The notes: a model not told the origin generated them from the sequence alone. Shown: positions 27,271 through 58,026, numbered from the stretch's first letter. The stretch is DNA of 64,000 bases from Monocercomonoides exilis PA203 (GCA_001643675.2 LSRY02000015.1:682001-746000); one strand, 5' to 3'. Translations and numbers: made by a program.

Positions 27271-27456
27271 ACGTAGCATTCGAAGAAACAGCATTATTGC
27301 AAGGCCTCATCTAATATTTTGTGAATTATAATCGAAATGAAATTTCATGTTTTATTTTTTTTTTCAATCAAGAATTTAATATATATTTAATTAAGTCCAT
27401 TTTGATCCTTCAAAAAATAATTTCATTCATCATCTAAATTGTGTTATCTCATCGAA

Positions 27457-30400
27457 ATGAATGTGCATTTGCAGTTTTTAGCGTGCTTGCTCCTTGCAAA
27501 CATGTTTGAAATCCAAGGTGTTTCTGGAAGTTCCACATGGAAAAGCGAAGGTATTCTCACAAATATTCATTTTTCATATTATCATGCATTTTCAGGCCAA
27601 GGCAATGCAAGTGATGTTCGATTTCCATCAAAGGTTGATGACAACTGTTTATTTGAACAGCAAAATGCATATGGAGTGAAAAAGTGGAAGTCAGGAATAT
27701 CTACAGTGATAAATGCATTTTTGGGATTCTGCAATACTTCGGTTGGACTGAAAAATTTGGCATTTGAATATTCTTCTCCATCATGTGTGCAAATAGCAGA
27801 CAAGTCAACAATAATGATGGAATCGTGTGTTTCCCACCAAACAACAACAACTCCTTTTCTTTTGCAAAGTGGGTCAATCAACATTGTGAATTTGACTTTG
27901 ATCCCTCAAATCAGTCTTTGTTCCAGAAGCCTCACATTTTCGTCGGATGACTCAAATTGTGTCGTTTTGAGAAATTCCATCATGACAGATCTGGCTGTTT
28001 CCTCTTCAGATTATTTTCTTTTGTCTGGAAAGAGCAAAAGTGAGCAGATCACTAATTGTGCCTTCAGGAACATGTCTATGGAATTTGACAAGAAAAGTGA
28101 TAAAAACATTGATCACTCATGCTTGTTGAGTTTGATGGAGAATAGTCTCATTTATTCGTGTGTGAATATGTTTGAAGGAGGGATCTCAGGTGGATCGTTT
28201 TTGTCAGAGGAATTCATCTGCAAAAATGTCACAACACATTTTGGGAAAAGAGAAATGAATGCTCTTGAGAAAAATGGACAAATGAATACAACTGAGAGTC
28301 AATCATTTTCATTGTGCGAATGGACTGATTGCATAGCACCACAGGGAGGGGCTCTTTATGTGCATGACAATTCAAATGCCATTCTGAAAGTTGAAAATTC
28401 GTCATTTTCAAGATGCAATGCTTCATCCACAAGAGGGGGTGCAATATATGCACTGAAAATCGCTGAATGCATTGTGCTTCATTCAACATTTATTCAATGT
28501 TCATGTGCTGCAACTACAGACCGTGGAGGCGGAGGAATAATGGTGGAGAATATTAACATTCAGTCAAAAGTCGATGATTGCTCTTTTCAAAACTGTTCTT
28601 CTGGAAACGATGGAGGGGCAATAAATGTACGACCAACAATGACGAAAAAGCAAAAGCCATGCATTATTAATTCAATTTTTTCAAACTGCAAAGTTAATCA
28701 TACAACCTCATCCACTGGAGGTGCTGTTGAACATTGGGACTGCACGGATCAAGTTGTAATTTCGAATTGTTTGTTTCGTAATTGTTATTCCAAGTGTGGA
28801 GGAGGAGCTGTGTGTCAATTGATAAATGAGAATAATAATGGAACATTGTTTTTCTACTGTTTTTTCCACAATAATTCTTGTGAACAAGGGGGACACGATA
28901 TTGCTCTTCATGATTCAGAAGCAAACAACATAGATTCAAGTTGTTATTCTACCAGGCAAACATCAAACAGAGTCAGCACAAAATACAATTCAGTTGTTGA
29001 TAAAAGCGATTGGCTTCGAAACGATTTTGGAAAAGTGAGGTTTGTCTCATCAACACAAACACAACCAAATTCCAAAGATACATATGCCTGTGGAATGGAT
29101 AAAAGCTATCCTTGCAGCACCATCGGCCATTGTTTAACACAATTGATTCCAGACTTTGTCTCCAATGTTGAAGTATTTTCAGAGACGATAAGAGAGACGA
29201 AGGGTGTGGACTGTGGAACAAATGCTTTCACAATATACGGTCAAAGTGATTCAACAACAACTGTGCAGACAGAATTGGAAGCAGCTGGGTTGGCTCTTTT
29301 TTCAGTCTCGACAGGAGCATTGACAGTCAATGATCTTGCCCTTGTGCATGACTCAGCATATGAAAATAATCGAGCCTCAAGGCTATTTGAGATCACTGGA
29401 ACTGGAAAGATGCAAGTAAGCAGACTGAACATATCTGTTGGAAGCGGACACTCAACAGAAACAACATTCACCACAGAGCTGATAAATGTTCAGGGAGGAA
29501 TGTTTCAAATGGAAAATGTGAACTGGGTCAAGACTATCTCAACAACTTCGCTGATTTCGCTTTCTTTGATAAATGAGATTTCATTGACATTTTCAGGGAG
29601 CACCTTTTCTGGGATAGAAAGAACAAGGAATGGAGCAGCTGTGATATCGTTTTCCAACTACAATGCAAACATCGACCTGGATTCCTGCACCTTTGAAGGT
29701 TGTGGAAGCACAAGTTCAGAAAATGGAGGATCGATGATGCTGTGTGTGGGAGAAGAAAATGAAGTGAAAGTGGAAGGTGGATCTTTTGATGAGTGCTATT
29801 GCTCAGCAACAGATGGCCTTGGAGGAGGAATCCACCTTCGATTATTGAATGAAAATCCCAATTTCTTGATCTCTTCTTCCTTTGGCACAAACACAGCCAA
29901 ATGGGGAAGTGACATTTTTGTTGACTCAATCGATCTGGAAACAACAGCAAAAAGTGGAAAGATAGCCCCGTTGACAGCTTCAATTGAAACGATAAACAAA
30001 ATTCGGGGATTCCACAATGGTGATGAAACGATTCCGATTCCTTTGTGTGCCTATCTGATTCCTATGCCAGATGAGATCTTTGTGAGTAATGTTGATGCAT
30101 TCAATCACTCTCGTTGTGGGTTTGCTGAGTTTCCCTGTCTAACACTGAAGCATTGCTTGACAAGACAAGAAGAGGAAAAGAAGATTATTGTTGAAGGGAT
30201 GATATTGATGAGTGACGAATTGGCGTTTGAAGAAAAGAAACACAGAATCCGAGGAAACGATGAAATCAGTGGCTGGACAATCTCTGATGCAAGCTCACCA
30301 TTAAACTCAGCGATGATAACAGCAAATGTTGAAACAATCTTTTCAAAGTTGATATTCTCTCTTCCTTCTTCGTTTTCTCTTCACTCCACTTTCATATCAT

Positions 30401-33400
30401 CTTCTTCACAACTGACTATGTCTCAATGTTTTCTTTCCCTTCAAAATCCATTATTAGAATTGACATTTCTGTTTTTATCTGTTGAATCTGGGACATTGGC
30501 TATTGACTCGTTATCAGCTTCATCAATCACTTTGAATGGAAATTCATTGATCTCTTTGTCTGGAAGCGGAACAAAGGCCGAGCTAATGAACACCAAATGG
30601 TTGAACATGACGAAAAGCAATTTCACAGAAATAGAAAGAAAAGCAGGAAGTGGAGGATGTGTGAGCATCGATAACAGCGATGATGAAGATTCAAATTCAG
30701 AAATAAATATTGAAGAATGTGTTTTTGATGGATGCTCTGTGCTGGCTGATGGAGGCAGAGGAGGTGCAATCAATGCGCAGTTGAAAGGGAATATTCAAAT
30801 GAATATTGTTTCATGCACATTTACAGGATGCACAGCACCAGCTGAAGAAGAAGGGAAAACTGGGTTTGGAGGAGGAACGGCACTGAAGTTAATTGATGAT
30901 TATTCTTCGTTTGTGATTTCATCTCCTGTTTTTGATAAAGAAAAGCCAAATGTTGCGAAATATGGAAATGACCTGTTTGTTGAGTCATCCAACTTGACAA
31001 AGAGCATCACAAACACCTCTCTTCCATTTGTGTCTGGGCATCTGCCAGATATCTCGTTGGATTCTATGAGAGGGTTTGATGGGAATGATACGGAGAATGC
31101 CATTCCACTGATCTATTTCTGGTTCGTTCTTGGCTCGGAAATATTTATCAGAGATGACGGAAAAGATGTATGCATTTGTGGTCTTTCAGATTATCCTTGT
31201 TTATCAATTGATTATTCATTGGATCGATTGCCTGAGGGAAATGAAAAGAATATTAACATCATTGAAAAAGGGTATCTTCAGAGGAGTGTTGATGTGAGTG
31301 GAATATCAGTGAAATCGGATAATGAAGAAGTGTGCTCTTTGGAATGTCTCTCATCGCTTGAAGGAGCAGAAGGAACTGCAATGAAGATTCAGGGTGTTAC
31401 GAATTTTGAACTGATTATGTTTGTGATGCCATCATCCTTCAGAAATGGAGTCGGTTATTTGATGGATGTTGGATCAAGTGAAGGATCGTTGACTCTGAAA
31501 GACTGCTCGTTCACAAAAAATGAAGAAAGTGGAGAAGAAATAGAAAAGATGAATTATGGACTGATCAAAGCAGATGAAGGCTCAGTTGTATTGGAATTTG
31601 TGTCAATGCAATCACTTTGTTTTTCAAAGGATGTTATTTCTGTGTTATCTTCAACGATTCTGAACATTAAGAACTTGACAACGAAGAATGTTGAGCTTGA
31701 AGGAGCAAGCGGATTGAGGATATCAAAGAGCTCAAGGAGAGAAAATAATGAAGAAGAACAAGATGTTATCATCGAGTGGAGTTCATTCGAAGAAGTCACC
31801 CAAAATACAACAGATGATATTCCCATCATCAGAAATGACAATGATGATGAGCCATTGAAAATGGTAATTCGAAACACAACAATGAAGAGATGTGGTGGAA
31901 TGAGGTGTGGAAAGGGGGGAGGGATGCTTTGTGTGTTGAATGAGGGAGGAAGCTTCGACTGCTCGTTTTGCACGATTTCTGAGTGTTTCTGCTCGAGCAC
32001 AGGAAGAGGCGGGTGGCTGTTTCTGGAATGCACCTCGGTGGTTGAGCAGCCTCTGAACTTTATTCTGTCGAATATCACATTCAGAGACAACTCTGCGTTC
32101 AGAGGGAGAGATGTGTATGTTCGATGCCACTCAATCGAAACACAAATTGTTGATGAGCAATTCCTTTTGGATTTCAGAACACCATTTGTGAAGGATCTTG
32201 CAATATGGGGATGCACAACAGACTCATTTGTGGGGGAAGAGGATCTTCTGCTGAGGGTTGTGAAATACCAGAGCGAGACGATATTTGTTTCTTCAGCAAC
32301 AGGCAACCACGGAGACAGCAAGCAATGTGGAGAGTTCAAAATGCCTTGCCACTCATTGGATGTTGGAGTTCAACACATCATTCCTTCATCATATTCGCAG
32401 CTGTTGATCTCAGAGGAGACGATCATCAATGGGGAATGTGATATGCATGATGTGATCATCCGCTCACTTCAATCTCCCTCAACTGCTTTGGTGCATCTGA
32501 ACTCAACAATTTCTGGCAATGAGGGCAGTCTTCTCAAAACTTCTGAGAAAGTTCGGATTGAGAGTGTGAAATTCAACTTTGACCAATCGTTTTCATATTC
32601 AGGCAGTTCTCTCATTCATGGATCAAGTGGGCAACTTTCTCTTTCATTTGTTGACTTCTCATCTGCTGGAGGGTCAAACAACAACCAACTTGTTGTTGTT
32701 CTCAACTCGACATTGCTGAGCATTGCAAAAGGGATTCTTCATGTTGACAACTGCTCAGTGTCACTCCTTTCGTTCATGAAGCCTTCGTTTCTGTTAAATG
32801 GAGATGAGGTCTCATTCACAAATATGAAACTGGGACAGATTGAATCAACAAGAAATGTTGTTGAGATTGGGCAATGCAGAAATGTTGTGCTGAATGGAAT
32901 TGATGCAAATGGAGTGAAGTTGTCTGAGGGTTGCATCCTTTCGATTGGCAGTTTAGCTTCGGGAAGTGTTTCAGTTGGAAGCTCCTCGTTCAAGAACTGC
33001 TCGAGGAATTCAGAAGGGGCTTCTGTTCTTTCCGCTTCTTCAACTTCTGCTCAAATTGTTCTTTCTAACTGTTCCTGCTCAAACTGCAATTCTCTGTCAA
33101 GCAAAGGAAGCATGATGGAGATGAACAATGCGAAGGATGTTTTGATGGATTCGTGTCCATTTGTCGGAGTTCTTGTAAAAGAATGCGAAAGCGAGATAAA
33201 TGATGCATTTGATGAGATATGCGAATGGAATGGATCACTTGTTCACCTAGAAAACTCCAATACACATACAAAAGAAATAAGGATGGAAAATTCATCGAAA
33301 GGAGGAATATCGATAAAAGGAGGAAAGGTTGTTATTGAGATGGGAATGATGGCAAACAACAATCCATTCATTGAAAAATATCCATCTCTTCGAAGAAACA

Positions 33401-35220
33401 TCATCTGCTCTGATTCTGCTTCACTGTCTATTTCCAGTTTGAAAGGAGGAGATGGAGTTTTCCCAGACATATCGATGTGGATATTGAATGATGGATGTCT
33501 AATTGAAGGGATTGTTTCTGAAAGAGCATCACCATTCCACATTCCAGTGTTGGAGAGTGTTGAAACAAGGGAAGAAGGAGAAGAAGCTGAGGTTGTGTTC
33601 AAAGGGAAGCTTCTTCTCCCGTGCAACTTGTCATTCATGATTGTGAAACAGATTGGGGACGAAAAGCAGATAGAGAAATATGAGTTTGATGAGAGTGGAT
33701 TTGTGTCGGAAACAGAAGTCGAAGGGAGATTGGAAAAGGAGAGGATAAGCGAGGCAGGAGAAGAGGCAGAGGTGAGAGTGAGCATTCTGTTTGGGGACGG
33801 AAATAATCCATCGTCCACTGATTCTTTCATTGTGAAGAACAGAAGTGAGCCCAAGGCTAATGGAGATGAAAGGATTGCCGAGGGAGGGAAAGAAAGGAAA
33901 TCATATTGGTTGTTGATTGTTATTGTGCTTGTTATTTTATTGTTGATTGTTCTTATTGTTTCTGTTATTCTTGCAATCACATGGAGAAAGGCAAAGAACG
34001 AGAATAAAGATCTGAGAGAGATTGTGAACGATAACATCAGAAAGGATCCGAAGGCGTTTGAGATGGTGACGATGGAGATGTCACCAGAGGCACAGTGGAG
34101 GAGAGCAGAGAAGGAGGCAGAGAAGAAGAATGAAGAAAGAATGAAGAAGAGAGTATACGAGAAAAGTTTGGGACACTCAGAGTCATCAGAGCATCTTCTT
34201 TCTGAGAGTGGCTCAACAGAATATATATTGGGAAAAGATTCAGACAAGATCCCTCAATGGATGTTGGAAAAAGTTGAAGAAGAGGAAATTAGAAAACAGA
34301 CTCCTTCTCCATCAATTTCTTCAACATGTTCAACTGATTCAGATTCCACATTTGTTCGAGGGGAAGATTTGTGCCCGACCACATCATCGATGTCGAATCT
34401 GGTGGATGCAATGGCCTGTTCATCTCCACATGAGAAACTGATTGTGGATTTGAGGGATTCGCTGTTCATGCTTTTGCATGGAAAGAACAAGACAAAGGAG
34501 ATGGCGATTGGCACTCTGCAGGAAAGAGAACAAACAGCTGCCCAGATCCTGTTCTGGGTGGCGAACGGGGCACTCCATTCATTTGATGAAATTGAAAACC
34601 CTCTTCAATCTCTTTCCAATCTGAGCCCTCACATTGTATTGTTCTCAGAACACATGGTGATCTGCATTGTGATGCATTCAGACTTATTGCCAGATGATGA
34701 TTCAGATTCATCCTCCATCTCATCATCAACTGTTGTGACATCTACAAGTGGCAATGATGATGAGGATTCTCTGCCCTCGTCTGCCTTTGAGGATGAAGAT
34801 AGTTTCAAAAAAGAGTGTCTGAGGTGGAAGGCTCCAGAGCTGCAGATAAACAAGAAGATGGGAGCAACAAAGGAGTCGGTTTCATTCTCGATAGGGATGA
34901 TGCTGTGGGAGTGCCTGACCCTTCAAATCCCGTTTGGGGAGTATGAGGCAGAGGTGGCAGGGCAGAAGATAGTGAATGGGGAAAGACCGATCTTGGGCAC
35001 TGTTAGACAAACGCGATTGTTTGAGATACTCAGGGATTGTCTATCAAATCATGTGAGCAGCAGACCTTCATTGCAAGGCATAAAGCGAGTATTCATCCAG
35101 CTATTTCCTGAATCAGGGCAAATGATTACGATGTCAGATGCTGTGGATTATGAAACAGAATCAGAGGAGCATGGAGGCGGGAATAGCGGAGATGGAGAAA
35201 CAAGTATTGTGAGTTATTAA
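27457..35220 (+). CDS. Giant single-pass membrane protein with degenerate kinase-like tail, paralog 2
   Basis: Uninterrupted ORF; first ATG at 27457 (MNVHLQFLACLLLA, signal-like). Same architecture as paralog 1. TM WLLIVIVLVILLLIVLIVSVILAITW; LRWKAPE; GMMLWECLT. Confidence 0.85.
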   Translation: MNVHLQFLACLLLANMFEIQGVSGSSTWKSEGILTNIHFSYYHAFSGQGNASDVRFPSKVDDNCLFEQQNAYGVKKWKSGISTVINAFLGFCNTSVGLKNLAFEYSSPSCVQIADKSTIMMESCVSHQTTTTPFLLQSGSINIVNLTLIPQISLCSRSLTFSSDDSNCVVLRNSIMTDLAVSSSDYFLLSGKSKSEQITNCAFRNMSMEFDKKSDKNIDHSCLLSLMENSLIYSCVNMFEGGISGGSFLSEEFICKNVTTHFGKREMNALEKNGQMNTTESQSFSLCEWTDCIAPQGGALYVHDNSNAILKVENSSFSRCNASSTRGGAIYALKIAECIVLHSTFIQCSCAATTDRGGGGIMVENINIQSKVDDCSFQNCSSGNDGGAINVRPTMTKKQKPCIINSIFSNCKVNHTTSSTGGAVEHWDCTDQVVISNCLFRNCYSKCGGGAVCQLINENNNGTLFFYCFFHNNSCEQGGHDIALHDSEANNIDSSCYSTRQTSNRVSTKYNSVVDKSDWLRNDFGKVRFVSSTQTQPNSKDTYACGMDKSYPCSTIGHCLTQLIPDFVSNVEVFSETIRETKGVDCGTNAFTIYGQSDSTTTVQTELEAAGLALFSVSTGALTVNDLALVHDSAYENNRASRLFEITGTGKMQVSRLNISVGSGHSTETTFTTELINVQGGMFQMENVNWVKTISTTSLISLSLINEISLTFSGSTFSGIERTRNGAAVISFSNYNANIDLDSCTFEGCGSTSSENGGSMMLCVGEENEVKVEGGSFDECYCSATDGLGGGIHLRLLNENPNFLISSSFGTNTAKWGSDIFVDSIDLETTAKSGKIAPLTASIETINKIRGFHNGDETIPIPLCAYLIPMPDEIFVSNVDAFNHSRCGFAEFPCLTLKHCLTRQEEEKKIIVEGMILMSDELAFEEKKHRIRGNDEISGWTISDASSPLNSAMITANVETIFSKLIFSLPSSFSLHSTFISSSSQLTMSQCFLSLQNPLLELTFLFLSVESGTLAIDSLSASSITLNGNSLISLSGSGTKAELMNTKWLNMTKSNFTEIERKAGSGGCVSIDNSDDEDSNSEINIEECVFDGCSVLADGGRGGAINAQLKGNIQMNIVSCTFTGCTAPAEEEGKTGFGGGTALKLIDDYSSFVISSPVFDKEKPNVAKYGNDLFVESSNLTKSITNTSLPFVSGHLPDISLDSMRGFDGNDTENAIPLIYFWFVLGSEIFIRDDGKDVCICGLSDYPCLSIDYSLDRLPEGNEKNINIIEKGYLQRSVDVSGISVKSDNEEVCSLECLSSLEGAEGTAMKIQGVTNFELIMFVMPSSFRNGVGYLMDVGSSEGSLTLKDCSFTKNEESGEEIEKMNYGLIKADEGSVVLEFVSMQSLCFSKDVISVLSSTILNIKNLTTKNVELEGASGLRISKSSRRENNEEEQDVIIEWSSFEEVTQNTTDDIPIIRNDNDDEPLKMVIRNTTMKRCGGMRCGKGGGMLCVLNEGGSFDCSFCTISECFCSSTGRGGWLFLECTSVVEQPLNFILSNITFRDNSAFRGRDVYVRCHSIETQIVDEQFLLDFRTPFVKDLAIWGCTTDSFVGEEDLLLRVVKYQSETIFVSSATGNHGDSKQCGEFKMPCHSLDVGVQHIIPSSYSQLLISEETIINGECDMHDVIIRSLQSPSTALVHLNSTISGNEGSLLKTSEKVRIESVKFNFDQSFSYSGSSLIHGSSGQLSLSFVDFSSAGGSNNNQLVVVLNSTLLSIAKGILHVDNCSVSLLSFMKPSFLLNGDEVSFTNMKLGQIESTRNVVEIGQCRNVVLNGIDANGVKLSEGCILSIGSLASGSVSVGSSSFKNCSRNSEGASVLSASSTSAQIVLSNCSCSNCNSLSSKGSMMEMNNAKDVLMDSCPFVGVLVKECESEINDAFDEICEWNGSLVHLENSNTHTKEIRMENSSKGGISIKGGKVVIEMGMMANNNPFIEKYPSLRRNIICSDSASLSISSLKGGDGVFPDISMWILNDGCLIEGIVSERASPFHIPVLESVETREEGEEAEVVFKGKLLLPCNLSFMIVKQIGDEKQIEKYEFDESGFVSETEVEGRLEKERISEAGEEAEVRVSILFGDGNNPSSTDSFIVKNRSEPKANGDERIAEGGKERKSYWLLIVIVLVILLLIVLIVSVILAITWRKAKNENKDLREIVNDNIRKDPKAFEMVTMEMSPEAQWRRAEKEAEKKNEERMKKRVYEKSLGHSESSEHLLSESGSTEYILGKDSDKIPQWMLEKVEEEEIRKQTPSPSISSTCSTDSDSTFVRGEDLCPTTSSMSNLVDAMACSSPHEKLIVDLRDSLFMLLHGKNKTKEMAIGTLQEREQTAAQILFWVANGALHSFDEIENPLQSLSNLSPHIVLFSEHMVICIVMHSDLLPDDDSDSSSISSSTVVTSTSGNDDEDSLPSSAFEDEDSFKKECLRWKAPELQINKKMGATKESVSFSIGMMLWECLTLQIPFGEYEAEVAGQKIVNGERPILGTVRQTRLFEILRDCLSNHVSSRPSLQGIKRVFIQLFPESGQMITMSDAVDYETESEEHGGGNSGDGETSIVSY

Positions 35221-38200
35221 AAGGAATGAAAAAGGCAATGAAGAATGTAGAATGAAGAATGAAGATATGTGATGTGTGATGTGAAAGTTCGATGAAATGG
35301 AGAATCTGTGAAACCATTTTTAAAAAAATGTGTTTTCAGTCTCTCTTTGTTCTTTTGTTCTTCCCTTTTGACACATTATTCTGAAGCCTCAAGCAAAAAG
35401 TTGGAAATGAAAATGAAAGATAAGAAACGGTGCATGCAATTATGAGGAATGATTGATGGATAGATCGGATTTAGAAGCGATTTTCTGATGAAAGATTTTG
35501 AGAATGTGTCATTTTGAATGTTACATCTCTGTTTGATCGAGCAAGCATATGCTTTGAAGAGAAAAAGATTGCGATTTAACGATCAACCTGAATCTTTTTA
35601 GTATTCAAAGCAATTGCAACATAAAAAAAGAAAAAGAACAATTTTTTTCTTTCAGTGTTTCTTTCGTTATTTCTTTGAGCAGTTGGCGTTTTTTTTTATT
35701 ATACAAGGGGAAAACTGTTAAGCATTATCAGGAGAAGAGTTTTTATGTGATGGAAACTGATTATTTTCACTGAGAGCAAACAGTTCCACAACGCCTCTAC
35801 AACGGGAGATAATCATAGAATATTGGATTTCCAGTTTTCAAAATATGTTAAAACGGCAGCACTCAAAGTTGGAGCACAGCCAAGGTGGATGGTCATTTAT
35901 CCAATTATCTGGACAATTGGCAGCACAGGGCCACATAATTCTATCTGCATTAACACAAGTTTTGGCACATCTATTAACTCTTCCGGATGAAAGGACAGTA
36001 TTCCATTCTTCTCAAGGAATGAGAGGAATACAAAATTTGGAGACAAAGATTTGTTAGTAAAGTTGTAATTGTCAATGACTTCATTGAGCTTTTCGCGATT
36101 TTTTGTGATACAGGTGATTGTGATTGGGGTGGACTTTTTAATGGGACACTTTCCTTTATTGGCACTTTTTATTAGTTTTGATGTGCCAATCAAGTGAGAA
36201 TGCCAAATAAGTTTCAACTCCCCAACTGACCTTTAAAATCAAAATTTGCACTATTATTTGCAAGGTTGTTTTTGTTTTTGTTTATTATCCATTTCGAAAT
36301 TGAGGTGTTTTTTTTTGTTAATTTCAAAGTCATTCTAAACATCCAACAAAGATTTTCTCAAAAATCTGAAATAGAGATTTGAAGAAATATTGACTTTTGT
36401 CTATTTATCTTTGAAAAATAACAAAAGATTTTAAAACGTTTTTCTTTTTTTAAATGGAATTTTTTTCATTTCACAATTTTTCTACAAACAGAAATCTCAT
36501 TTTGTTTTTTAATGATGATGGAAAAAATTGAAAAAAATTAAAAGCTTATTTGATGAATGTAAAATTGGGTGACAATGTGTGAGAAATATTGTCCATCACA
36601 AAATTTTGATTGTCCTTTGCTTGCATTTTGTTCCTTTCTTGAATTGATCCATGGTCAATTGATAATGAATTTCACAACGAAACATTTGTATTTATTCAAA
36701 TATAGATTTATTCAAATCTCCAAATTTCTGTTAAGTTCGATGATAATTATTAATGATTTTCCATCATCATTAAAAAACAAAATGAGATTTCTGTTTGTAG
36801 AAAAATTGTGAAATGAAAAAAATTCCATTTAAAAAAAGAAAAACGTTTTAAAATCTTTTGTTATTTTTCAAAGATAAATAGACAAAAGTCAATATTTCTT
36901 CAAATCTCTATTTCAGATTTTTGAGAAAATCTTTGTTGGATGTTTAGAATGACTTTGAAATTAACAAAAAAAAACACCTCAATTTCGAAATGGATAATAA
37001 ACAAAAACAAAAACAACCTTGCAAATAATAGTGCAAATTTTGATTTTAAAGGTCAGTTGGGGAGTTGAAACTTATTTGGCATTCTCACTTGATTGGCACA
37101 TCAAAACTAATAAAAAGTGCCAATAAAGGAAAGTGTCCCATTAAAAAGTCCACCCCAATCACAATCACCTGTATCACAAAAAATCGCGAAAAGCTCAATG
37201 AAGTCATTGACAATTACAACTTTACTAACAAATCTTTGTCTCCAAATTTTGTATTCCTCTCATTCCTTGAGAAGAATGGAATACTGTCCTTTCATCCGGA
37301 AGAGTTAATAGATGTGCCAAAACTTGTGTTAATGCAGATAGAATTATGTGGCCCTGTGCTGCCAATTGTCCAGATAATTGGATAAATGACCATCCACCTT
37401 GGCTGTGCTCCAACTTTGAGTGCTGCCGTTTTAACATATTTTGAAAACTGGAAATCCAATATTCTATGATTATCTCCCGTTGTAGAGGCGTTGTGGAACT
37501 GTTTGCTCTCAGTGAAAATAATCAGTTTCCATCACATAAAAACTCTTCTCCTGATAATGCTTAACAGTTTTCCCCTTGTATAATAAAAAAAAACGCCAAC
37601 TGCTCAAAGAAATAACGAAAGAAACACTGAAAGAAAAAAATTGTTCTTTTTCTTTTTTTATGTTGCAATTGCTTTGAATACTAAAAAGATTCAGGTTGAT
37701 CGTTAAATCGCAATCTTTTTCTCTTCAAAGCATATGCTTGCTCGATCAAACAGAGATGTAACATTCAAAATGACACATTCTCAAAATCTTTCATCAGAAA
37801 ATCGCTTCTAAATCCGATCTATCCATCAATCATTCCTCATAATTGCATGCACCGTTTCTTATCTTTCATTTTCATTTCCAACTTTTTGCTTGAGGCTTCA
37901 GAATAATGTGTCAAAAGGGAAGAACAAAAGAACAAAGAGAGACTGAAAACACATTTTTTTAAAAATGGTTTCACAGATTCTCCATTTCATCGAACTTTCA
38001 CATCACACATCACATATCTTCATTCTTCATTCTACATTCTTCATTGCCTTTTTCATTCCTTTTAATAACTCACAATACTTGTTTCTCCATCTCCGCTATT
38101 CCCGCCTCCATGCTCCTCTGATTCTGTTTCATAATCCACAGCATCTGACATCGTAATCATTTGCCCTGATTCAGGAAATAGCTGGATGAATACTCGCTTT

Positions 38201-41200
38201 ATGCCTTGCAATGAAGGTCTGCTGCTCACATGATTTGATAGACAATCCCTGAGTATCTCAAACAATCGCGTTTGTCTAACAGTGCCCAAGATCGGTCTTT
38301 CCCCATTCACTATCTTCTGCCCTGCCACCTCTGCCTCATACTCCCCAAACGGGATTTGAAGGGTCAGGCACTCCCACAGCATCATCCCTATCGAGAATGA
38401 AACCGACTCCTTTGTTGCTCCCATCTTCTTGTTTATCTGCAGCTCTGGAGCCTTCCACCTCAGACACTCTTTTTTGAAACTATCTTCATCCTCAAAGGCA
38501 GACGAGGGCAGAGAATCCTCATCATCATTGCCACTTGTAGATGTCACAACAGTTGATGATGAGATGGAGGATGAATCTGAATCATCATCTGGCAATAAGT
38601 CTGAATGCATCACAATGCAGATCACCATGTGTTCTGAGAACAATACAATGTGAGGGCTCAGATTGGAAAGAGATTGAAGAGGGTTTTCAATTTCATCAAA
38701 TGAATGGAGTGCCCCGTTCGCCACCCAGAACAGGATCTGGGCAGCTGTTTGTTCTCTTTCCTGCAGAGTGCCAATCGCCATCTCCTTTGTCTTGTTCTTT
38801 CCATGCAAAAGCATGAACAGCGAATCCCTCAAATCCACAATCAGTTTCTCATGTGGAGATGAACAGGCCATTGCATCCACCAGATTCGACATCGATGATG
38901 TGGTCGGGCACAAATCTTCCCCTCGAACAAATGTGGAATCTGAATCAGTTGAACATGTTGAAGAAATTGATGGAGAAGGAGTCTGTTTTCTAATTTCCTC
39001 TTCTTCAACTTTTTCCAACATCCATTGAGGGATCTTGTCTGAATCTTTTCCCAATATATATTCTGTTGAGCCACTCTCAGAAAGAAGATGCTCTGATGAC
39101 TCTGAGTGTCCCAAACTTTTCTCGTATACTCTCTTCTTCATTCTTTCTTCATTCTTCTTCTCTGCCTCCTTCTCTGCTCTCCTCCACTGTGCCTCTGGTG
39201 ACATCTCCATCGTCACCATCTCAAACGCCTTCGGATCCTTTCTGATGTTATCGTTCACAATCTCTCTCAGATCTTTATTCTCGTTCTTTGCCTTTCTCCA
39301 TGTGATTGCAAGAATAACAGAAACAATAAGAACAATCAACAATAAAATAACAAGCACAATAACAATCAACAACCAATATGATTTCCTTTCTTTCCCTCCC
39401 TCGGCAATCCTTTCATCTCCATTAGCCTTGGGCTCACTTCTGTTCTTCACAATGAAAGAATCAGTGGACGATGGATTATTTCCGTCCCCAAACAGAATGC
39501 TCACTCTCACCTCTGCCTCTTCTCCTGCCTCGCTTATCCTCTCCTTTTCCAATCTCCCTTCGACTTCTGTTTCCGACACAAATCCACTCTCATCAAACTC
39601 ATATTTCTCTATCTGCTTTTCGTCCCCAATCTGTTTCACAATCATGAATGACAAGTTGCACGGGAGAAGAAGCTTCCCTTTGAACACAACCTCAGCTTCT
39701 TCTCCTTCTTCCCTTGTTTCAACACTCTCCAACACTGGAATGTGGAATGGTGATGCTCTTTCAGAAACAATCCCTTCAATTAGACATCCATCATTCAATA
39801 TCCACATCGATATGTCTGGGAAAACTCCATCTCCTCCTTTCAAACTGGAAATAGACAGTGAAGCAGAATCAGAGCAGATGATGTTTCTTCGAAGAGATGG
39901 ATATTTTTCAATGAATGGATTGTTGTTTGCCATCATTCCCATCTCAATAACAACCTTTCCTCCTTTTATCGATATTCCTCCTTTCGATGAATTTTCCATC
40001 CTTATTTCTTTTGTATGTGTATTGGAGTTTTCTAGGTGAACAAGTGATCCATTCCATTCGCATATCTCATCAAATGCATCATTTATCTCGCTTTCGCATT
40101 CTTTTACAAGAACTCCGACAAATGGACACGAATCCATCAAAACATCCTTCGCATTGTTCATCTCCATCATGCTTCCTTTGCTTGACAGAGAATTGCAGTT
40201 TGAGCAGGAACAGTTAGAAAGAACAATTTGAGCAGAAGTTGAAGAAGCGGAAAGAACAGAAGCCCCTTCTGAATTCCTCGAGCAGTTCTTGAACGAGGAG
40301 CTTCCAACTGAAACACTTCCCGAAGCTAAACTGCCAATCGAAAGGATGCAACCCTCAGACAACTTCACTCCATTTGCATCAATTCCATTCAGCACAACAT
40401 TTCTGCATTGCCCAATCTCAACAACATTTCTTGTTGATTCAATCTGTCCCAGTTTCATATTTGTGAATGAGACCTCATCTCCATTTAACAGAAACGAAGG
40501 CTTCATGAACGAAAGGAGTGACACTGAGCAGTTGTCAACATGAAGAATCCCTTTGCAATGCTCAGCAATGTCGAGTTGAGAACAACAACAAGTTGGTTGT
40601 TGTTTGACCCTCCAGCAGATGAGAAGTCAACAAATGAAAGAGAAAGTTGCCCACTTGATCCATGAATGAGAGAACTGCCTGAATATGAAAACGATTGGTC
40701 AAAGTTGAATTTCACACTCTCAATCCGAACTTTCTCAGAAGTTTTGAGAAGACTGCCCTCATTGCCAGAAATTGTTGAGTTCAGATGCACCAAAGCAGTT
40801 GAGGGAGATTGAAGTGAGCGGATGATCACATCATGCATATCACATTCCCCATTGATGATCGTCTCCTCTGAGATCAACAGCTGCGAATATGATGAAGGAA
40901 TGATGTGTTGAACTCCAACATCCAATGAGTGGCAAGGCATTTTGAACTCTCCACATTGCTTGCTGTCTCCGTGGTTGCCTGTTGCTGAAGAAACAAATAT
41001 CGTCTCGCTCTGGTATTTCACAACCCTCAGCAGAAGATCCTCTTCCCCCACAAATGAGTCTGTTGTGCATCCCCATATTGCAAGATCCTTCACAAATGGT
41101 GTTCTGAAATCCAAAAGGAATTGCTCATCAACAATTTGTGTTTCGATTGAGTGGCATCGAACATACACATCTCTCCCTCTGAACGCAGAGTTGTCTCTGA

Positions 41201-43385
41201 ATGTGATATTCGACAGAATAAAGTTCAGAGGCTGCTCAACCACCGAGGTGCATTCCAGAAACAGCCACCCGCCTCTTCCTGTGCTCGAGCAGAAACACTC
41301 AGAAGTCGTGCAAAACGAGCAGTCGAAGCTTCCTCCCTCATTCAACACACAAAGCATCCCTCCCCCTTTCCACACCTCATTCCACCACATCTCTTCATTG
41401 TTGTGTTTCGAATTACCATTTTCAATGGCTCATCATCATTGTCATTTCTGATGATGGGAATATCATCTGTTGTATTTTGGGTGACTTCTTCGAATGAACT
41501 CCACTCGATGATAACATCTTGTTCTTCTTCATTATTTTCTCTCCTTGAGCTCTTTGATATCCTCAATCCGCTTGCTCCTTCAAGCTCAACATTCTTCGTT
41601 GTCAAGTTCTTAATGTTCAGAATCGTTGAAGATAACACAGAAATAACATCCTTTGAAAAACAAAGTGATTGCATTGACACAAATTCCAATACAACTGAGC
41701 CTTCATCTGCTTTGATCAGTCCATAATTCATCTTTTCTATTTCTTCTCCACTTTCTTCATTTTTTGTGAACGAGCAGTCTTTCAGAGTCAACGATCCTTC
41801 ACTTGATCCAACATCCATCAAATAACCGACTCCATTTCTGAAGGATGATGGCATCACAAACATAATCAGTTCAAAATTCGTAACACCCTGAATCTTCATT
41901 GCAGTTCCTTCTGCTCCTTCAAGCGATGAGAGACATTCCAAAGAGCACACTTCTTCATTATCCGATTTCACTGATATTCCACTCACATCAACACTCCTCT
42001 GAAGATACCCTTTTTCAATGATGTTAATATTCTTTTCATTTCCCTCAGGCAATCGATCCAATGAATAATCAATTGATAAACAAGGATAATCTGAAAGACC
42101 ACAAATGCATACATCTTTTCCGTCATCTCTGATAAATATTTCCGAGCCAAGAACGAACCAGAAATACACCAGTGGAACGGCATTCGTTGTATCACTTCCA
42201 TCAAACCCTCTCATGGAATTCAATGAAATACCATCCAGATGCTCAGACACAAATGGAAGAGAGGTGTTTGTGATGCTCTTTGTCAAGTTGGATGACTCAA
42301 CAAACAGGTCATTTCCATATTTTGCAACATTTGGTTTTTCTAAATCAAAAACAGGGGATGAAATCACAAACGAAGAATAATCATCAATTAACTTCAGTGC
42401 CGTTCCTCCTCCAAACCCAGTTTTCCCTTCTTCTTCAGCTGGTGCTGTGCATCCTGTAAATGTGCATGAAACAATATTCATTTGAATATTCCCTTTCAAC
42501 TGCGCATTGATTGCACCTCCTCTGCCTCCATCAGCCAGCACAGAGCATCCATCAAAAACACATTCTTCAATATTTATTTCTGAATTTGAATCTTCATCAT
42601 CGCTGTTATCGATGCTCACACATCCTCCACTTCCTGCTTTTCTTTCTATTTCTGTGAAATTGCTTTTCGTCATGTTCAACCATTTGGTGTTCATTAGCTC
42701 GGCCTTTGTTCCGCTTCCAGACAAAGAGATCAATGAATTTCCATTCAAAGTGATTGATGAAGCTGATAACGAGTCAATAGCCAATGTCCCAGATTCAACA
42801 GATAAAAACAGAAATGTCAATTCTAATAATGGATTTTGAAGGGAAAGAAAACATTGAGACATAGTCAGTTGTGAAGAAGATGATATGAAAGTGGAGTGAA
42901 GAGAAAACGAAGAAGGAAGAGAGAATATCAACTTTGAAAAGATTGTTTCAACATTTGCTGTTATCATCGCTGAGTTTAATGGTGAGCTTGCATCAGAGAT
43001 TGTCCAGCCACTGATTTCATCGTTTCCTCGGATTCTGTGTTTCTTTTCTTCAAACGCCAATTCGTCACTCATCAATATCATCCCTTCAACAATAATCTTC
43101 TTTTCCTCTTCTTGTCTTGTCAAGCAATGCTTCAGTGTTAGACAGGGAAACTCAGCAAACCCACAACGAGAGTGATTGAATGCATCAACATTACTCACAA
43201 AGATCTCATCTGGCATAGGAATCAGATAGGCACACAAAGGAATCGGAATCGTTTCATCACCATTGTGGAATCCCCGAATTTTGTTTATCGTTTCAATTGA
43301 AGCTGTCAACGGGGCTATCTTTCCACTTTTTGCTGTTGTTTCCAGATCGATTGAGTCAACAAAAATGTCACTTCCCCATTTGGCT
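29895..43385. repeat. ~6.6-kb inverted duplication (arms 29895-36525 and 36757-43385, 231-bp spacer)
   Basis: Mirror-image ORFs, with coordinate sums of 73282 near the centre. Arms are near-identical, including non-coding DNA. Confidence 0.93.
36127..37155. mobile_element. Foldback/MITE-like element (~400-bp arms) at the centre of the large palindrome
   Basis: Begins GGGTGGACTTTTTAATGGGACACTTTCCTTTATTGGCACTTTTT, clearly related to the terminus of the 50828-51838 foldback element (GGGTCAACTTTTTAATGGGACTTTTTCCCTTATTGGCACTTTTT). Similar ~1-kb size. Confidence 0.75.
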
Positions 43386-45772
43386 CTGTTCCCTTCAAAT
43401 CCTGATGAAATCAGAAACTCTGCATTTGTGTCTTTCACTTTCAGCCCAATCCCTCCTCCTCTTCCTTGAGCAGCCAAGGCATAACAGTTCTTCACAACAC
43501 CTCCATTCATCTTCAATGAACCAACATTCCCCACCTCAACCATCACACCCCCTCCAAACTCAGAGGCTTCACTCCCACAGCCATCAATCGTGCATCCATC
43601 AAAAGTTATTGAATGTGACCCTTCACCCACATTCATCAGCGATGATCCTGCTGTTGTCCTCACAATGTTGTTGAATGTGCAGTTATCCAGAGTCAACGAA
43701 ACTGAAGATCCTTGAGAAAGAGATATCACACTTGTGGTGCTGAATGTTTGTGACCATCTCACATCTTTCATCTTCAAACTTCCCCCTTCCATCTCCACAA
43801 GTGAGTTCTGAATGCTCCTCTCTTCTGAATGATCTGCATCCATCGAAATGTTCAATCTCTTCATATCCATCAACCCACTTCCCTGAACCTCAAATAATCT
43901 GCTTCTTCGGTTGTTTTCAAATGATGAATCGTGAATCACAGACAGATCGCTCACATTCAATTCCCCTGTTCCAACACAAAACAGACTCAGTCCATTTGAT
44001 TCAAATTGTGTTTCAATAGCTGAGCCAGCTGGCGAAACTCCATTCACAGAGATTGTTTTCTCACCAATATCAATTCCTTTGACTTCCACAACTGTTCCAC
44101 TCAGCACCTTGATTTCCTCCACAAATCCAGAAATCATTTGGGAAAGGCAATGGCTGATTGTGAGGCATGCACAGCTTTCATTCAATCCGCAGCTGTATGT
44201 ATCCTTTGCGTTTGTCTGATTTTGAGTTGAAGCAACAAATCTGCATTTCCCACCAGTATTTGGAAGCCACTCACTTTTATCTCCGCCTGCATAATATCGG
44301 ACTCCTTCTGTTCTTGTTGAATAGCACCAAACAAGTTGAGAATCAGTCGAGTTATCTGAAATATAAATATCATTTCCATATGGTGCTGTGTTATTATGGA
44401 AAAAGCAAAACCAAAGCAAACTTCCTCCAAAACTCAATACCCTCATAGCGACACCACCACCGTGATAATTTGAGCGGCAATCTTGAAATAAACAGTTTTT
44501 TGTAACAATTTTATCAATTGGATTCCAATTAATATAGGCCCCTCCGTCTGTGCTTCTGGGATCGTGCCCGCTGCAATTAATAAAAGAGCAATCCAAAACG
44601 CAATCTTTTGTTTTTGTAGCATTTGAACTCCAAATTCCAAGTCCACCTGCATCGTCTCCTGACCATCCATCTTTGAAAAAGCAATTTTCAAAAAATACTT
44701 GAATTGTCATTCCGGAAATTTCTGCTCCTGCACCTCCAAAATGGTTTGATGCAACGCAATAACACTCAATAAATGTGGAATGTCTCACTGTGCATTCGGC
44801 AATATTAAAGGCAAAAATACCTCCACCTCTTGTTGAAGTTGCATTGCACTTCACAAATGATGAATTCTCAACTGTTAATGTGGCATTTGAATTGTCATGC
44901 ACATACAGTGCACCACCACATGGAGCTGAGCATTCATTCCATTCAGCATTCTTATATGTCTGTGTTTGAGTTGTTGAATTTCTTTCTGTATTTCCCACTC
45001 TCCAATCCACTCTTTCGTTGTGGAGGAATGTGCAGTTGTTGCAGGAAAATGCAACGGATCCTTCTGTTCCACTCACAATCCCTCCCTCCAGCACATTCAT
45101 CGAACTTTCAACTTGGCAATCCTCAATTGAACTCATTTTCATCATTGGCACTTTCTCATTTGGCATTTCATCTTCCTTCATAAATTTCATTGTGATGTTT
45201 GAAAAAGCACAGTTTTTGATTCCTTCATATGACCCTTCTCCATTTCTCAAAATGCTTCCACTCCCACAAAACACAATGTTCTTCCACTCACTGTTTCTCA
45301 CAAGCAACGATGAATCTTCTCCTTCAATCTTCACAAGACTCTTCATCATCATATCGCAATTGTGATTTCTTCTTTCCGTGCTCAAAGTGGTGTTCATCAT
45401 TTCGCATGTTCCTTCATTGAAGACAAAATATCCATCGAAACCTCTTTTTCTCATCAACAAGCAGTCATCAAGACGCAGGAATGATTTTGCTCGAACATCA
45501 AATGCCACATCATCATCTGCTCCTTCAAACAATATTCCCTTGAATTCTACTGATGAGTTATGTATTTTGCAGAACAGTCGAACAAGACTTCCCTGCTCCA
45601 AAATATGACTTTCAGACTGAGCAGGAATATGATAAATGAGATGTTCATTCCTTTGTGCATCATTTAAATCTATGCCACTTATAGTGAAACACAAGCACTC
45701 AGTCAAAACCAAAAGAATCATTGTCATAAGGAAATAATGGGTCATAATAAACCATATTTTTATATAATTCAT
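38062..45772 (-). CDS. Giant membrane protein paralog 3, chimeric between paralogs 1 and 2; two 1-bp homopolymer frameshifts (~41365, ~40553) may be real or sequencing errors
   Basis: ORFs of 1476, 295 and 820 aa join into a full-length protein. The breaks are G6->G5 and A4->A3 relative to paralog 2. Confidence 0.8.
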
Positions 45773-49409: not shown

Positions 49410-50341
49410 CACCAAAAATAATTCAAATTCGAAAAAGAATAATTCAATTTCGTAATTAATAATTCGAAATCGAAAATTAATAATTCGAATTCGAAATTAA
49501 TATTTCAATTTCGAAAAAAAATAATTCGATTTCGGAATTAATAATTCAAAATCGAAAAAAAATAATTCAATTTCGTAATTTATTAATTCATTTTCGAAAA
49601 AAAATAATTCGAATTCGAAAAAAAATAATTCGATTTCGAAATTCATTATTAACTGAAATTTTTAATTTTTCTCGAGAATGGATTTCAGAAAAGTTCAAGT
49701 TATTTTTTAATTAATCAAATTTTATTTCTCATAGAAAACTGTTTTTTTTATTGCAACAATCAATAAATCAATTTTTTTAAATTTTTTTTTTCATTTTCGA
49801 AAATCATCACTCAAATATTAATAATTTTAAAAAAATTCATTCTATTGAATAACCAAATAAAAATTTAAAAAAAATTTAATCACGATAATTGAATTATTTC
49901 TTCACAATAATGTGATTGTTTCATTGGCAAAATTCTGAATAATATCGGTTTTAAACATGAAAATGTATTTCTTTCCTTTTCAAATTAACTTTAAAATTAA
50001 TAAATTTCAATCAAAATGAATGAAATATGTTGAATGAAAATGCGTCATTTTTCAAATGTTGATAAACAAAATTTGCTGATGAGATAAAAATTTAAAGAGT
50101 TTAAAACCCCAAACACAAGTTATTCATTCCACAAATCAAAAAAATTCACGTTTCGAAATTGAATTATTCTTTTTCGAAATCGAATTAATAAATTACGAAA
50201 TTGAATTATTAATTTTCGATTTTGAATTATTAATTCCGAATTTGAATTATAAATTTTCGATTTCGAATTATTAATTACGAAATTGAATTATTCTTTTTCG
50301 AATTTGAATTATTTTTTTTCGAATTAGAATTATTTTTGGTG
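49410..50341. mobile_element. Non-autonomous TIR element (CACC...GGTG) with tandem ~21-bp subterminal repeats, TA flanks; copy 1
   Basis: TA|CACCAAAAATAATTC ... GAATTATTTTTGGTG|TA. Arrays of AATTCRAWTTCGAAA in opposite orientation at each end. Core shared with 52932-53591. Confidence 0.85.
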
Positions 50342-50708: not shown

Positions 50709-50827
50709 TTTAAAACGTGAAAATTAATGTTGAAACTCACAAAAAAAAATAAAATTGAAATCATCATATGCAAATATGTCTAGAAGGAACGATCAAATTT
50801 TTTGATCAACACATTTTCAAAATAATT

Positions 50828-51838
50828 GGGTCAACTTTTTAATGGGACTTTTTCCCTTATTGGCACTTTTTTTGTTTTTGACTGCCAACTTTCAACAAAC
50901 GTTGATTGGCTTTCAGTACTTCAAAAAACCTTTTTTTACAAGTTTAACACAATTTATTTACAGTTTGTTTTTTAATTTTTGCTTATTACACATTGAGAAA
51001 TTACGTTTTTTTGTTAAATTTGAAAGGACTTTTACCAGCCAACTAGGCAACGTCCAAGAAATTGGATACATGTTTCAAATAGCAATTACTATTATCTAAC
51101 TACTTTTAAATTCTTTTTTTTCATAAACACTTTTTTCTTGTTTTTTTCACATTTCATTTTTTTAACAACATTCTAACATAAAACCGATTATTTCTTTGTT
51201 AATATAATGAAATGATAAAAATAAAAATTTGATATGATAAACAAATAGTCTAATAATAAAGTATTGGAAAAATGAAACATTAATTTTTTCTATTTGTCAA
51301 GAACTTATCTTTTTTTACAAAAATTTGATCATCGATTATTTTAAGAAAGCTCCATTTGTCCGTTTTAGTTAAATAGAAAAAATAAATGTTTCATTTTAAC
51401 AACACTTCATTATTAGGGTATATGTTTTTCATATCACATTTTTATTTTTATCATTTCATTATATTCACAAAGAAATAATCGGTTTTATGTTAGAATGTTG
51501 TTAAAAAAATGAAATGTGAAAAAAACAAGAAAAAAGTGTTTATGAAAAAAAAGAATTTAAAAGTAGTTAGATAATAGTAATTGCTATTTGAAACATGTAT
51601 CCAATTTCTTGGACGTTGCCTAGTTGGCTGGTAAAAGTCCTTTCAAATTTAACAAAAAAACGTAATTTCTCAATGTGTAATAAGCAAAAATTAAAAAACA
51701 AACTGTAAATAAATTGTGTTAAACTTGTAAAAAAAGGTTTTTTGAAGTACTGAAAGCCAATCAACGTTTGTTGAAAGTTGGCAGTCAAAAACAAAAAAAG
51801 TGCCAATAAGGGAAAAAGTCCCATTAAAAAGTTGACCC
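50828..51838. mobile_element. 1011-bp foldback element (~370-bp perfect, ~470-bp imperfect arms)
   Basis: GGGTCAAC...GTTGACCC termini. Mirror ORFs 50842-51099 and 51567-51851. TAATT flanks both sides (possible TSD). Confidence 0.88.
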
Positions 51839-51864
51839 TAATTGTTTTCAAAAAAAAATTGGAA

Positions 51865-52931: not shown

Positions 52932-53591
52932 CACCAAAAATAATTCAAATTCGAAAAAGAATAATTCGATTTCGGAATTAATATTTCGATTTCGGAAATA
53001 AATAATTCAAATTCGAAAATGTTTATTTCAATTTCGAAATTCATTGAAAACAGAAATTTTTTATTTTTCTCGAAAATGGATTTCAAAAAAGTTCAAGTTA
53101 TTTTTTTAACCAGTCAAATATTATTACTCATTGAAAACTGTTTTTTTTATCGCAACAATCAATAAATCAATTTTTTAAAAATTATTTTTCATTTTCGAAA
53201 ATCATCACTCACAAAATAATAATTTTATAAAAATTCATTCTATTGAATAACCAAATAAAAATTTAAAAAATCCAATCACGATTATTGAATTATTTCTTCA
53301 CAATAATGTGATTGTTTCATTGGCAAAATTTTGAATAATATCGGTTTTAAACATGAAAATGTATTTATTTCTTATTCAAAATAAGTTCAATCAATAAATC
53401 TTCATTCAAAATGAAAGGAAATTTTTTAATGAAAATGCATCATTTTTCAAATATTGCTAAACAAAATTTGCTGATGAGATAAAAATTTAAAGAATTTAAA
53501 ACCCCAAACACTAGTTATTCATTCCACAAATCAAAATAATTAACGTTTCGAAATTGAATTATTCTTTTTCGAATTCGAATTATTTTTGGTG
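52932..53591. mobile_element. CACC...GGTG TIR element, copy 2 (660 bp, fewer subterminal repeats)
   Basis: Same termini and core as 49410-50341, in direct orientation. Left flank TA, right flank TT. Confidence 0.85.
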
Positions 53592-57466: not shown

Positions 57467-58026
57467 TAATTAAAAAAAAAAAAATTAAGATAAATAAAAA
57501 TGAAAATGAATGAATATCAATAAATAAATAAATTGATAAATTGACGAAAAAATAAAAAAAATTAAATAAAAAAACACTTCAAGGAACAAAGGGTTCATTA
57601 ACATATCTTCTCTGTTATATCAGAAATATATAGATAAACACAAAATCATTGATAATAGTGGTAAATTTTGTGTTTGTTGATAATTTTCTTTAGTGATTTT
57701 AAATGTGATTAAAAAATATCACACAAAATATTAATCTCTATTCTGTTTGATAATATGAATATTTTCAATAGCATGCATATATTTATTCGAATATCATTAA
57801 ATATTTTGAAACATATAATTTCTTCAAAAAACTGCATTTCATCACTTAACAATCTGATATTCAAATATGCCTCTATTGTATTTCATTTCACAGTTATTTA
57901 AAATCATTCTATCACTGAATTTATAATAAAAAAAATAAGTTATCCAACAATTGCGAATTTTTCTTTCAAGAAAATTTTTTATTTATACAACGATCTGATA
58001 GTTTTTTAAAAGAGCAGTAACTCAAC

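Follow-up and report, generated by a model that had tools for sequence, protein, structure and literature searches.

A mosaic receptor gene of Monocercomonoides exilis joins an arm of a transposon-centred palindrome to a head with tracts shared among dispersed paralogs

We analyzed a stretch of 64,000 nucleotides from contig 9 (C9) of Monocercomonoides exilis PA203 (GCA_001643675.2, LSRY02000015.1:682001-746000; C9:682001-746000). This whole stretch is referred to as the window, and positions without a contig prefix are counted from its first letter. ORF (open reading frame) finding revealed three paralogous genes in the window, each about 7.7 kb long, and the third of them is a mosaic. This mosaic is probably the result of the formation or maintenance of a palindrome combined with ectopic gene conversion, and we see no sign of programmed switching. 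The three genes are:

512-8221, minus strand: paralog 1 (P1), an intact type-1 receptor gene of 2,569 amino acids (ORF and translation)
27439-35220, plus strand: paralog 2 (P2), an intact type-2 receptor gene of ~2,590 amino acids (ORF)
38062-45772, minus strand: paralog 3 (P3), the mosaic, as assembled three ORFs (41342-45772, 40503-41390 and 38062-40524)

The true start of P2 is probably the ATG six codons 3' of the TTG given by the ORF finder. The three genes with their flanks were aligned three-way in MAFFT, and informative sites were scored for each segment. The alignment places the segment boundaries of P3 within ~5 bp of those given by a first-pass annotation of this DNA, which had already described the gene as a mosaic of P1 and P2. 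According to that annotation, P3 follows P2 to the end of the gene, and the segments were read as the product of module shuffling, by analogy with segmental gene conversion in the VSG genes of trypanosomes and vlsE of Borrelia. The identity to P2 is real and begins at 43390, but it does not end with the stop at 38062: it runs on for another 1.3 kb, as far as 36757. This part of P3 forms one arm of a palindrome centred on a transposon and differs in this from the conversion tracts of VSG and vlsE. The parts of this palindrome, here called W, and a second transposon copy are:

29890-36525, plus strand: left palindrome arm, with the 3' 5.3 kb of P2 and 1.3 kb downstream (BLAST)
36757-43390, minus strand: right palindrome arm, with the 3' 5.3 kb of P3 and 1.3 kb downstream (BLAST)
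36526-36756, no strand: unique palindrome spacer of 231 bp, holding a 40-bp remnant 80% identical to the inner arms of two further contig-9 palindromes, A and B
36127-37155, no strand: foldback-type transposon at the palindrome axis, with 399-bp inverted arms around the 231-bp spacer
50814-51852, no strand: foldback element that consists almost wholly of its arms (491 nt each, 96% complementary), which enclose a spacer of 57 nt

When aligned against each other with BLAST, the 6,636-bp arms of W are 99.6% identical (24 mismatches, 2 gaps), and the whole palindrome measures 13.5 kb. Outside four places of difference, the arms match perfectly, which accounts for 96% of their length. Thus, arms of more than 99% identity, a unique spacer and the carriage of genes come together in W as expected of a palindrome with arm-to-arm gene conversion. 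At the informative sites of the arm, P3 follows P2 in 1,429 of 1,452 cases. Of the 23 sites that follow P1, 22 are adjacent, which has a chance of the order of 1e-45; these 22 consecutive sites (42356-42167) lie inside the 6,636-bp P2-identical stretch, and all are in the P1 state. The remaining differences between P3 and P2 in the arm are one P1-state site at the outer edge, a unique substitution at 41305 and two 1-bp deletions.

The symmetry centre of W is occupied by a foldback transposon, as long inverted repeats form most of the element at 36127-37155. Over 63-67 bp, its termini share 84% identity with either end of the element at 50814-51852, and on at least 12 other contigs there are inverted pairs that match its terminal 60-290 bp. 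Termini and flanks were compared using the copy at 50814-51852 and one in L025: the termini align between copies and the flanks diverge from the first base of the repeat, as is the case for dispersed copies. No clear target-site duplication is seen in the flanks of the three copies, those of the palindrome being mirror images by construction. Palindromes A and B carry the same foldback element at the same site, but with a middle of 3.2-3.9 kb. In B, this middle (C9:415367-418560, ~1367-4560 in L034; 3.2 kb) is 89-91% identical to that of A and contains ORFs of 226 and 175 amino acids without a Pfam match; indeed, none of the ORFs of the palindrome spacers and the downstream element gave a Pfam match. 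On the strand opposite to the receptor genes, the downstream elements of W (35897-36217, 37065-37385) and of B (L034 536-856, 5073-5393) keep an ORF of 106 amino acids open. It overlaps the transposon terminus, also lacks a Pfam match and may be open by chance.

For the origin of the palindrome we infer the following course of events. A break near the foldback transposon would have led to fold-back priming at the inverted repeats of the transposon and thereby to a palindrome. Homologous recombination within a type-1 paralog of opposite orientation would then have resolved this event and produced a chimeric gene, whose type-1 head is attached to the body of P2. Fold-back priming with homologous resolution predicts an axis on an inverted repeat, mirror-image flanks and an outer junction within shared identity, and all of these are seen in W. 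There is precedent for such a pathway: DNA that breaks close to a natural inverted repeat gives rise to fold-back inverted duplications, and secondary events mediated by repeats then stabilise them; the steps have been documented in yeast (PMC10622511). In common with such duplications in yeast and cancer, W has an inverted repeat exactly at its centre and an outer junction in repeated homologous sequence. In contrast, those duplications were seen experimentally, mostly in nuclease-deficient cells and as unstable dicentrics, whereas W is fixed, internal and stable, and its mechanism is read from its structure.

Upstream of the palindrome arm, P3 changes its partners. Five perfect tracts are common to P3 and P1 in the three-way alignment, and these are listed here together with a tract shared with a third gene:

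44799-45181, minus strand: perfect P3/P1 tract of 383 bp, equal to P1 7233-7615 (alignment)
44260-44500, minus strand: P3 tract shared with the gene at C9:637577-645271 (L004/L020), 118-119 of 120 positions identical
43324-43704, minus strand: perfect P3/P1 tract of 381 bp, equal to P1 5758-6138, adjoining the outer edge of the palindrome arm
42154-42361, minus strand: P1-identical patch of 208 bp within the arm, equal to P1 4585-4792
40885-41123, minus strand: tract of 239 bp identical in P1, P2 and P3 (P1 3559-3321; alignment)
40310-40554, minus strand: tract of 245-256 bp identical in P1, P2 and P3 (P1 3000-2745; alignment)

The 5' third of P3 is of type 1 and is 90% identical to P1. Of its informative sites (45772-43391), 940 follow P1, 79 follow P2 and 162 follow neither. 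To this extent the gene is "paralog-1-like" at its 5' end, as the first-pass annotation had put it, but the diverged tracts have other partners. Between the 383-bp and the 381-bp perfect tracts, the identity of P3 to P1 varies from 58 to 90%. At 44260-44500 it is 58-72%, and here P3 instead matches the gene at C9:637577-645271, which lies ~75 kb away in inverted orientation. Elsewhere in the P3 head, the best partner changes every 100-300 bp, and in the tree of the 5' block the head as a whole clusters with the gene at C9:637577-645271 and not with P1. The perfect tracts are far longer than chance would give: at ~15% divergence the longest identity run expected is ~45 bp, and the observed runs reach 208-383 bp. 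The family is not particularly conserved where these tracts lie, the 383-bp tract included, as mean pairwise identity is just 0.5-0.8 in the conservation profile. The last 62 bp of the 381-bp tract are identical in all three genes, and the switch from P1 to P2 identity falls there.

The patch of ~200 bp that had been noted within the P2-like part turned out to be a perfect run of 208 bp (42361-42154). It differs from P2 by 22 nucleotides and by 9 of 71 amino acids. The P2 version of the patch clusters with L002, exactly as do both flanks of P2 and P3, and the transfer therefore probably ran from P1 to P3, as far as the sequences tell. For the two 5' tracts (383 and 381 bp), nearest-neighbour continuity gave no clear signal of donor direction. 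The identical tracts amid divergence that had been reported for P1 and P2 are likewise present, with lengths of 239 and 256 bp. Beyond the mosaic itself, that earlier description had recognised neither the P2-identical segment as a palindrome arm reaching past the gene, nor the split of P3 into three ORFs, nor the third-gene partner, nor the family-wide patchwork. We propose that ectopic conversion copies tracts of 100-400 bp between dispersed members and has overwritten parts of the P3 head in this way; its partners there would be P1 and at least one other gene, and the same process would have put the 208-bp P1 patch into the P3 arm. An exact look-up of the P3 and P1 ORFs in a collection of 15 billion proteins gave no match, and a word search with 147 amino acids spanning both junctions of the patch gave a sole match, MONOS_7495 of M. 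exilis, at 77% identity.

The two further palindromes have the following coordinates:

C9:302266-309009 / 319704-312935, arms inverted: palindrome A
C9:404930-415366 / 429005-418561, arms inverted: palindrome B

A downstream element of 1.12 kb is present in W, A and B, has no other strong-scoring copy in the genome and is 86-89% identical between palindromes. In A, the plus-strand gene (A+) has a type-2 head like P2 and the minus-strand gene (A-) a type-1 head like P3. In B, both genes lie whole within the arms. Across W, A and B, 82-96% of the arm length is perfectly identical, and the differences are clustered in a few blocks of 159-1,013 bp; the local divergence in these clusters, 12-24%, is the normal distance between paralogs. 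Compared between palindromes, arms are just 82-94% identical (measured for W vs A), and identity is thus higher within than between palindromes. This pattern suggests that the arms of each palindrome evolve in concert or were regenerated recently at each locus. Import from third paralogs appears to be the main source of the differences between arms. The patch from P1 in W would be one example. In A-, a patch in which the two arms of A differ includes 249 bp that are identical to a gene at a distance of 107 kb. Both genes of A (C9:299900-322300; L012, L031, L023) have an in-frame stop at an equivalent position, followed in each by an open frame of 876 amino acids; the shared stop therefore arose before the arms were homogenised, or homogenisation spread it.

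The identity of the arms could be kept by continuing arm-to-arm conversion, which we favour, or by recent re-formation of the palindrome. Taken further, the second possibility would mean that no concerted evolution occurs and that W, A and B are each independent, very recent fold-back duplications at old copies of a unit of gene, downstream element and foldback transposon. This would fit the arms, which are essentially without scattered point differences, and the outer boundaries, which vary between palindromes: B takes in whole genes, and perfect identity in A starts ~370-450 bp further 3' than in W. Inverted repeats are, moreover, known to trigger such events repeatedly (PMC10622511). However, three events would be needed, and in two of them the resolution would have had to fall at almost the same point of a type-1 paralog and give the same pairing of a type-2 and a type-1 gene; we regard independent recent origins as a doubtful, if serious, alternative. 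Arm-to-arm conversion is favoured because A and W share this type-2/type-1 pairing and because the tracts identical in P1 and both arms of W are most simply explained by import into one arm and subsequent spread to the other.

The split of P3 into three ORFs is caused by two frameshifts:

41355-41370, minus strand: P3 frameshift 1, one G fewer in a G run than in P2 (alignment column 5591)
40548-40558, minus strand: P3 frameshift 2, one A fewer in an A run than in P1 and P2 (alignment column 6401)

The sole indels between the near-identical arms of A and B are also 1-bp homopolymer changes. According to its authors, the nanopore assembly of M. exilis was polished less well in multi-copy regions, which retain homopolymer frameshifts (PMC8767320). 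Both P3 frameshifts are probably nanopore errors, which would leave P3 probably intact in the living organism.

The same properties of the assembly have to be weighed for the mosaic as a whole. The arm identity, the P1 patch or both might come from consensus mixing of repeats by Canu, Nanopolish or Pilon, or the palindrome from a nanopore fold-back chimera. Every frameshift between near-identical arms in all three palindromes is indeed a homopolymer change of 1 bp, and the read N50 is 8.9 kb against arms of 6.6 kb. Nevertheless, an artefact appears improbable. W lies inside a contig of 1.8 Mb, and its arms run into different unique heads, of type 2 on one side and of type 1 on the other. Its axis falls on a real transposon instead of on a random read end. 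The diverged patches that A and B keep beside perfect tracts indicate that the pipeline preserves differences. Reads from P1 match P1 perfectly and would not be recruited to P3, whose flanks are 10-25% off P1. Finally, comparable perfect tracts join many gene pairs across 400 kb.

This last point leads to the family as a whole. The genome has no fewer than 18 copies of full length, which lie mainly on contig 9, and in 14 of the best 18 the frame is open throughout. Two head types can be distinguished, sharing ~54% identity in their first 2.4 kb; the 5.3 kb that follow are 78-87% identical whatever the head type. Among 20 genes that are ~15% diverged, we found 38 perfect tracts of at least 120 bp with partners up to 400 kb apart. 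In the contig-9 cluster, the tracts measure 120-390 bp, occur in both orientations and lie anywhere along the gene, including the part for the cytoplasmic tail. A Sawyer-type permutation test compared the longest shared tract of each gene pair with 300 shuffles. The observed length was never reached in 120 of 190 pairs for the 3' block and in 15 of 55 pairs for the type-1 5' block. The trees of the 5', middle and 3' blocks are incongruent, with support of 96-100 in the Shimodaira-Hasegawa-like approximate likelihood ratio test (SH-aLRT): P3 stands with L004 in the 5' block, (P2,P3) with L002 in the middle block, and the 3' block gives ((P2,P3),(A+,A-)). Recombination testing of the family had been suggested in the first-pass annotation, and the test is significant family-wide. 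Together, the permutation test, the 38 tracts and the incongruent trees make segmental gene conversion between members, as proposed there, the best account of the short perfect tracts.

Genes of either N-terminal type have 3' parts from intermixed lineages, and modules have therefore been shuffled on an evolutionary timescale. In this sense the module-shuffling that had been proposed for these receptors is borne out, but not as a dedicated system like that of VSG or vlsE, of which there is no sign. A programmed system of diversification or antigenic variation would have silent or partial copies donating segments often, with palindromes and transposons as its machinery. Very recent perfect tracts (0 differences in 208-383 bp) do show ongoing exchange, the proteins are predicted to be surface-exposed, their family is the largest in the genome (PMC6759080), and the patch alters 9 of 71 residues. 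Still, we consider such a system very unlikely. Most of the best copies, as counted above, are complete. Type-1 copies, including P3, have a conserved upstream region of their own of at least 0.8 kb, and P1 and P3 share ~2 kb upstream of their start codons at 75-81% identity. Tracts are spread all along the gene and over both orientations, and their lengths and endpoints are as expected of homology-driven mitotic or meiotic conversion. No recombination boxes between variable cassettes appear in the conservation profile, which is fairly even at ~0.8 over the 3' 5 kb, and the layout is thus not one of boxes and cassettes. In addition, the host is regarded as a commensal (PMC6759080). A separate feature of the upstream region is an insertion of ~460 bp in P3 (47320-47777), which breaks its homology to P1.

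With respect to their products, the family members are predicted to be giant single-pass membrane proteins with a signal peptide, a tandem right-handed beta-helix ectodomain of ~2,100 amino acids, one transmembrane helix and a degenerate kinase-like tail. In the P1 translation, the single transmembrane helix follows the ectodomain. The ectodomain has no Pfam match. An AlphaFold model of a 601-residue ectodomain segment, made with 14 paralogs, is all-beta with a mean predicted local distance difference test score (pLDDT) of 64; every one of its top Foldseek matches is a protein with a right-handed parallel beta-helix (E 1.7e-5 to 1e-3, template modelling (TM) scores ~0.2), and an Atlas feature search pointed to Beta_helix and Chlam_PMP. 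In the tail, Pfam detects the kinase C-lobe alone, at profile positions ~162-257 of 258, from the APE region onwards. A complete catalytic domain of the tyrosine kinase-like (TKL) group has an N-lobe with Gly-loop and Lys and a C-lobe with HRD and DFG; the N-lobe was not detected in the Pfam search, which points to a tail that is kinase-like and probably inactive. The best solved relatives of the tail are the pseudokinase ILK and MLT, with ILK ranking first. The cytoplasmic tail of P1 (515-1654) also contains a long acidic, serine-rich insert before the APE-like motif. A "protein tyrosine kinase" or tyrosine kinase-like expansion has been described as the largest family in the genome of M. exilis (PMC6759080), and the tyrosine kinase-like family overlaps with "unclassified repeats" (PMC8767320). 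The contig-9 receptor genes fit annotation within this expansion, and many receptors annotated as members of the "tyrosine kinase" family may be pseudokinases.

Several points weigh against our account of P3 as the product of a fold-back palindrome and ectopic conversion between members of a receptor family. The permutation test treats polymorphic sites as exchangeable, and its significance is overstated where subfamilies differ in blocks. The genes of W and A are not sister groups in the trees of the 5' and middle blocks, which leaves the 3' block, the downstream element and the transposon as the basis for shared ancestry of these two palindromes. The flanks of the central element give no clear target-site duplication. 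Read correction by Canu or polishing by Pilon could exaggerate the identity of the arms. Judged by the sequences, one ancient palindrome with concerted evolution would not be told apart from three recent fold-back events at paralogous loci. With a pLDDT of 64 and TM-scores of ~0.2, the structural model is one of moderate confidence.

Other repeats in the window lie outside the receptor genes. An inverted repeat of 2,311 bp (20423-22733 / 24961-27270; 99.9% identical) ends 169 bp upstream of the P2 start and flanks an ORF at 23652-24812, which matches the Pfam family Phage_integrase (tyrosine recombinase) at 1e-8. As a donor of receptor sequence, this repeat (20423-22733 / 27270-24961) was rejected, since it shows no nucleotide similarity to the receptor genes at E <1e-10. 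The AT-rich stretch to the right of P3 contains an inverted pair of 434 bp with 99.5% identity (55264-55697 / 57040-57472) and a direct pair of ~650 bp with 89% identity (49540-50187 / 52939-53582).

Several known systems can be set beside this receptor family. In the VSG genes of Trypanosoma brucei and vlsE of Borrelia, segmental gene conversion builds mosaics from segments of paralogs, with an expression site and silent cassettes. Mosaic genes made from paralog segments are found in M. exilis as well, and some members are interrupted; in contrast, there is no sign of a dedicated expression site or an array of promoter-less cassettes, most copies are complete, and type-1 copies have their own upstream region. 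The analogy drawn in the first-pass annotation is therefore not supported by the structure of the family. Ampliconic palindromes of sex chromosomes, such as the P1-P8 and VCY palindromes of the human Y, have arms that are kept identical by arm-to-arm gene conversion. They share with the M. exilis palindromes the inverted arms of more than 99% identity, the unique spacer, genes of multicopy families and higher identity within than between palindromes. Their arms, however, measure tens of kb to Mb compared with 6-10 kb here on an autosomal-type protist chromosome, the M. exilis axis is a transposon, and concerted evolution is suggested here by a single genome. Large families of single-pass surface proteins also occur in other anaerobic gut or mucosal protists, namely the transmembrane kinases of Entamoeba histolytica, which combine an ectodomain of repeats with a kinase or kinase-like domain in the cytosol, and the Pmp-like and BspA-like proteins of Trichomonas. 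Compared by description, the M. exilis proteins differ from these in their predicted beta-helix ectodomain of ~2,100 amino acids without a Pfam match and in a kinase domain of which the C-lobe alone is recognisable.

By analogy, the vsp repertoire of Giardia lamblia appears to be the closest precedent. It contains 14 identical gene pairs, arranged tail-to-tail or head-to-head at a distance of 2-4 kb, and identical genes occur only as such inverted pairs (Adam et al. 2010, PMC2996952). Evidence of recombination between members was obtained with Sawyer/GENECONV testing (PMC2996952). Like M. exilis, Giardia is a metamonad gut protist with a large family of surface proteins whose members recombine, and the separation of 2-4 kb compares with spacers of 3.2-3.9 kb in A and B. 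The proteins themselves are unrelated, the VSPs (variant-specific surface proteins) of Giardia being cysteine-rich and those of M. exilis predicted beta-helix proteins with a kinase-like tail. Furthermore, the arms of A and W end inside genes, the partners keep distinct heads, and the axis is occupied by a foldback transposon. In Giardia, an epigenetic mechanism switches between VSP genes, of which a single one is expressed at any time, whereas the M. exilis family is known here from its genes.

Altogether, the mosaic reveals no new kind of mechanism: it probably reflects concerted evolution and ectopic conversion in a family of surface proteins, together with transposon-centred palindromes. 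What is new compared with the assembly paper is the view of the contig-9 members as giant, predicted beta-helix receptors with a degenerate kinase tail and pervasive short-tract conversion. Annotators should be cautious, as frameshifted "pseudogenes" in these arms are probably polishing errors. W represents a natural, fixed inverted duplication centred on an inverted repeat, in which a homology-mediated outer junction would have created a chimeric gene. Some family members sit in transposon-centred palindromes with identical arms, which provides a parallel to the Giardia VSP genes in a second metamonad lineage. A more far-reaching and rather unlikely possibility is that foldback transposons repeatedly seed palindromes with genes in their arms, by which one receptor's head is joined to another's body, and that these events and very frequent short-tract conversion form a fast, possibly mitotic source of chimeras. 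If true, this would provide a protist that lives as a gut commensal with a contingency system for varying its surface, and the system would be convergent with the inverted VSP gene pairs of Giardia.

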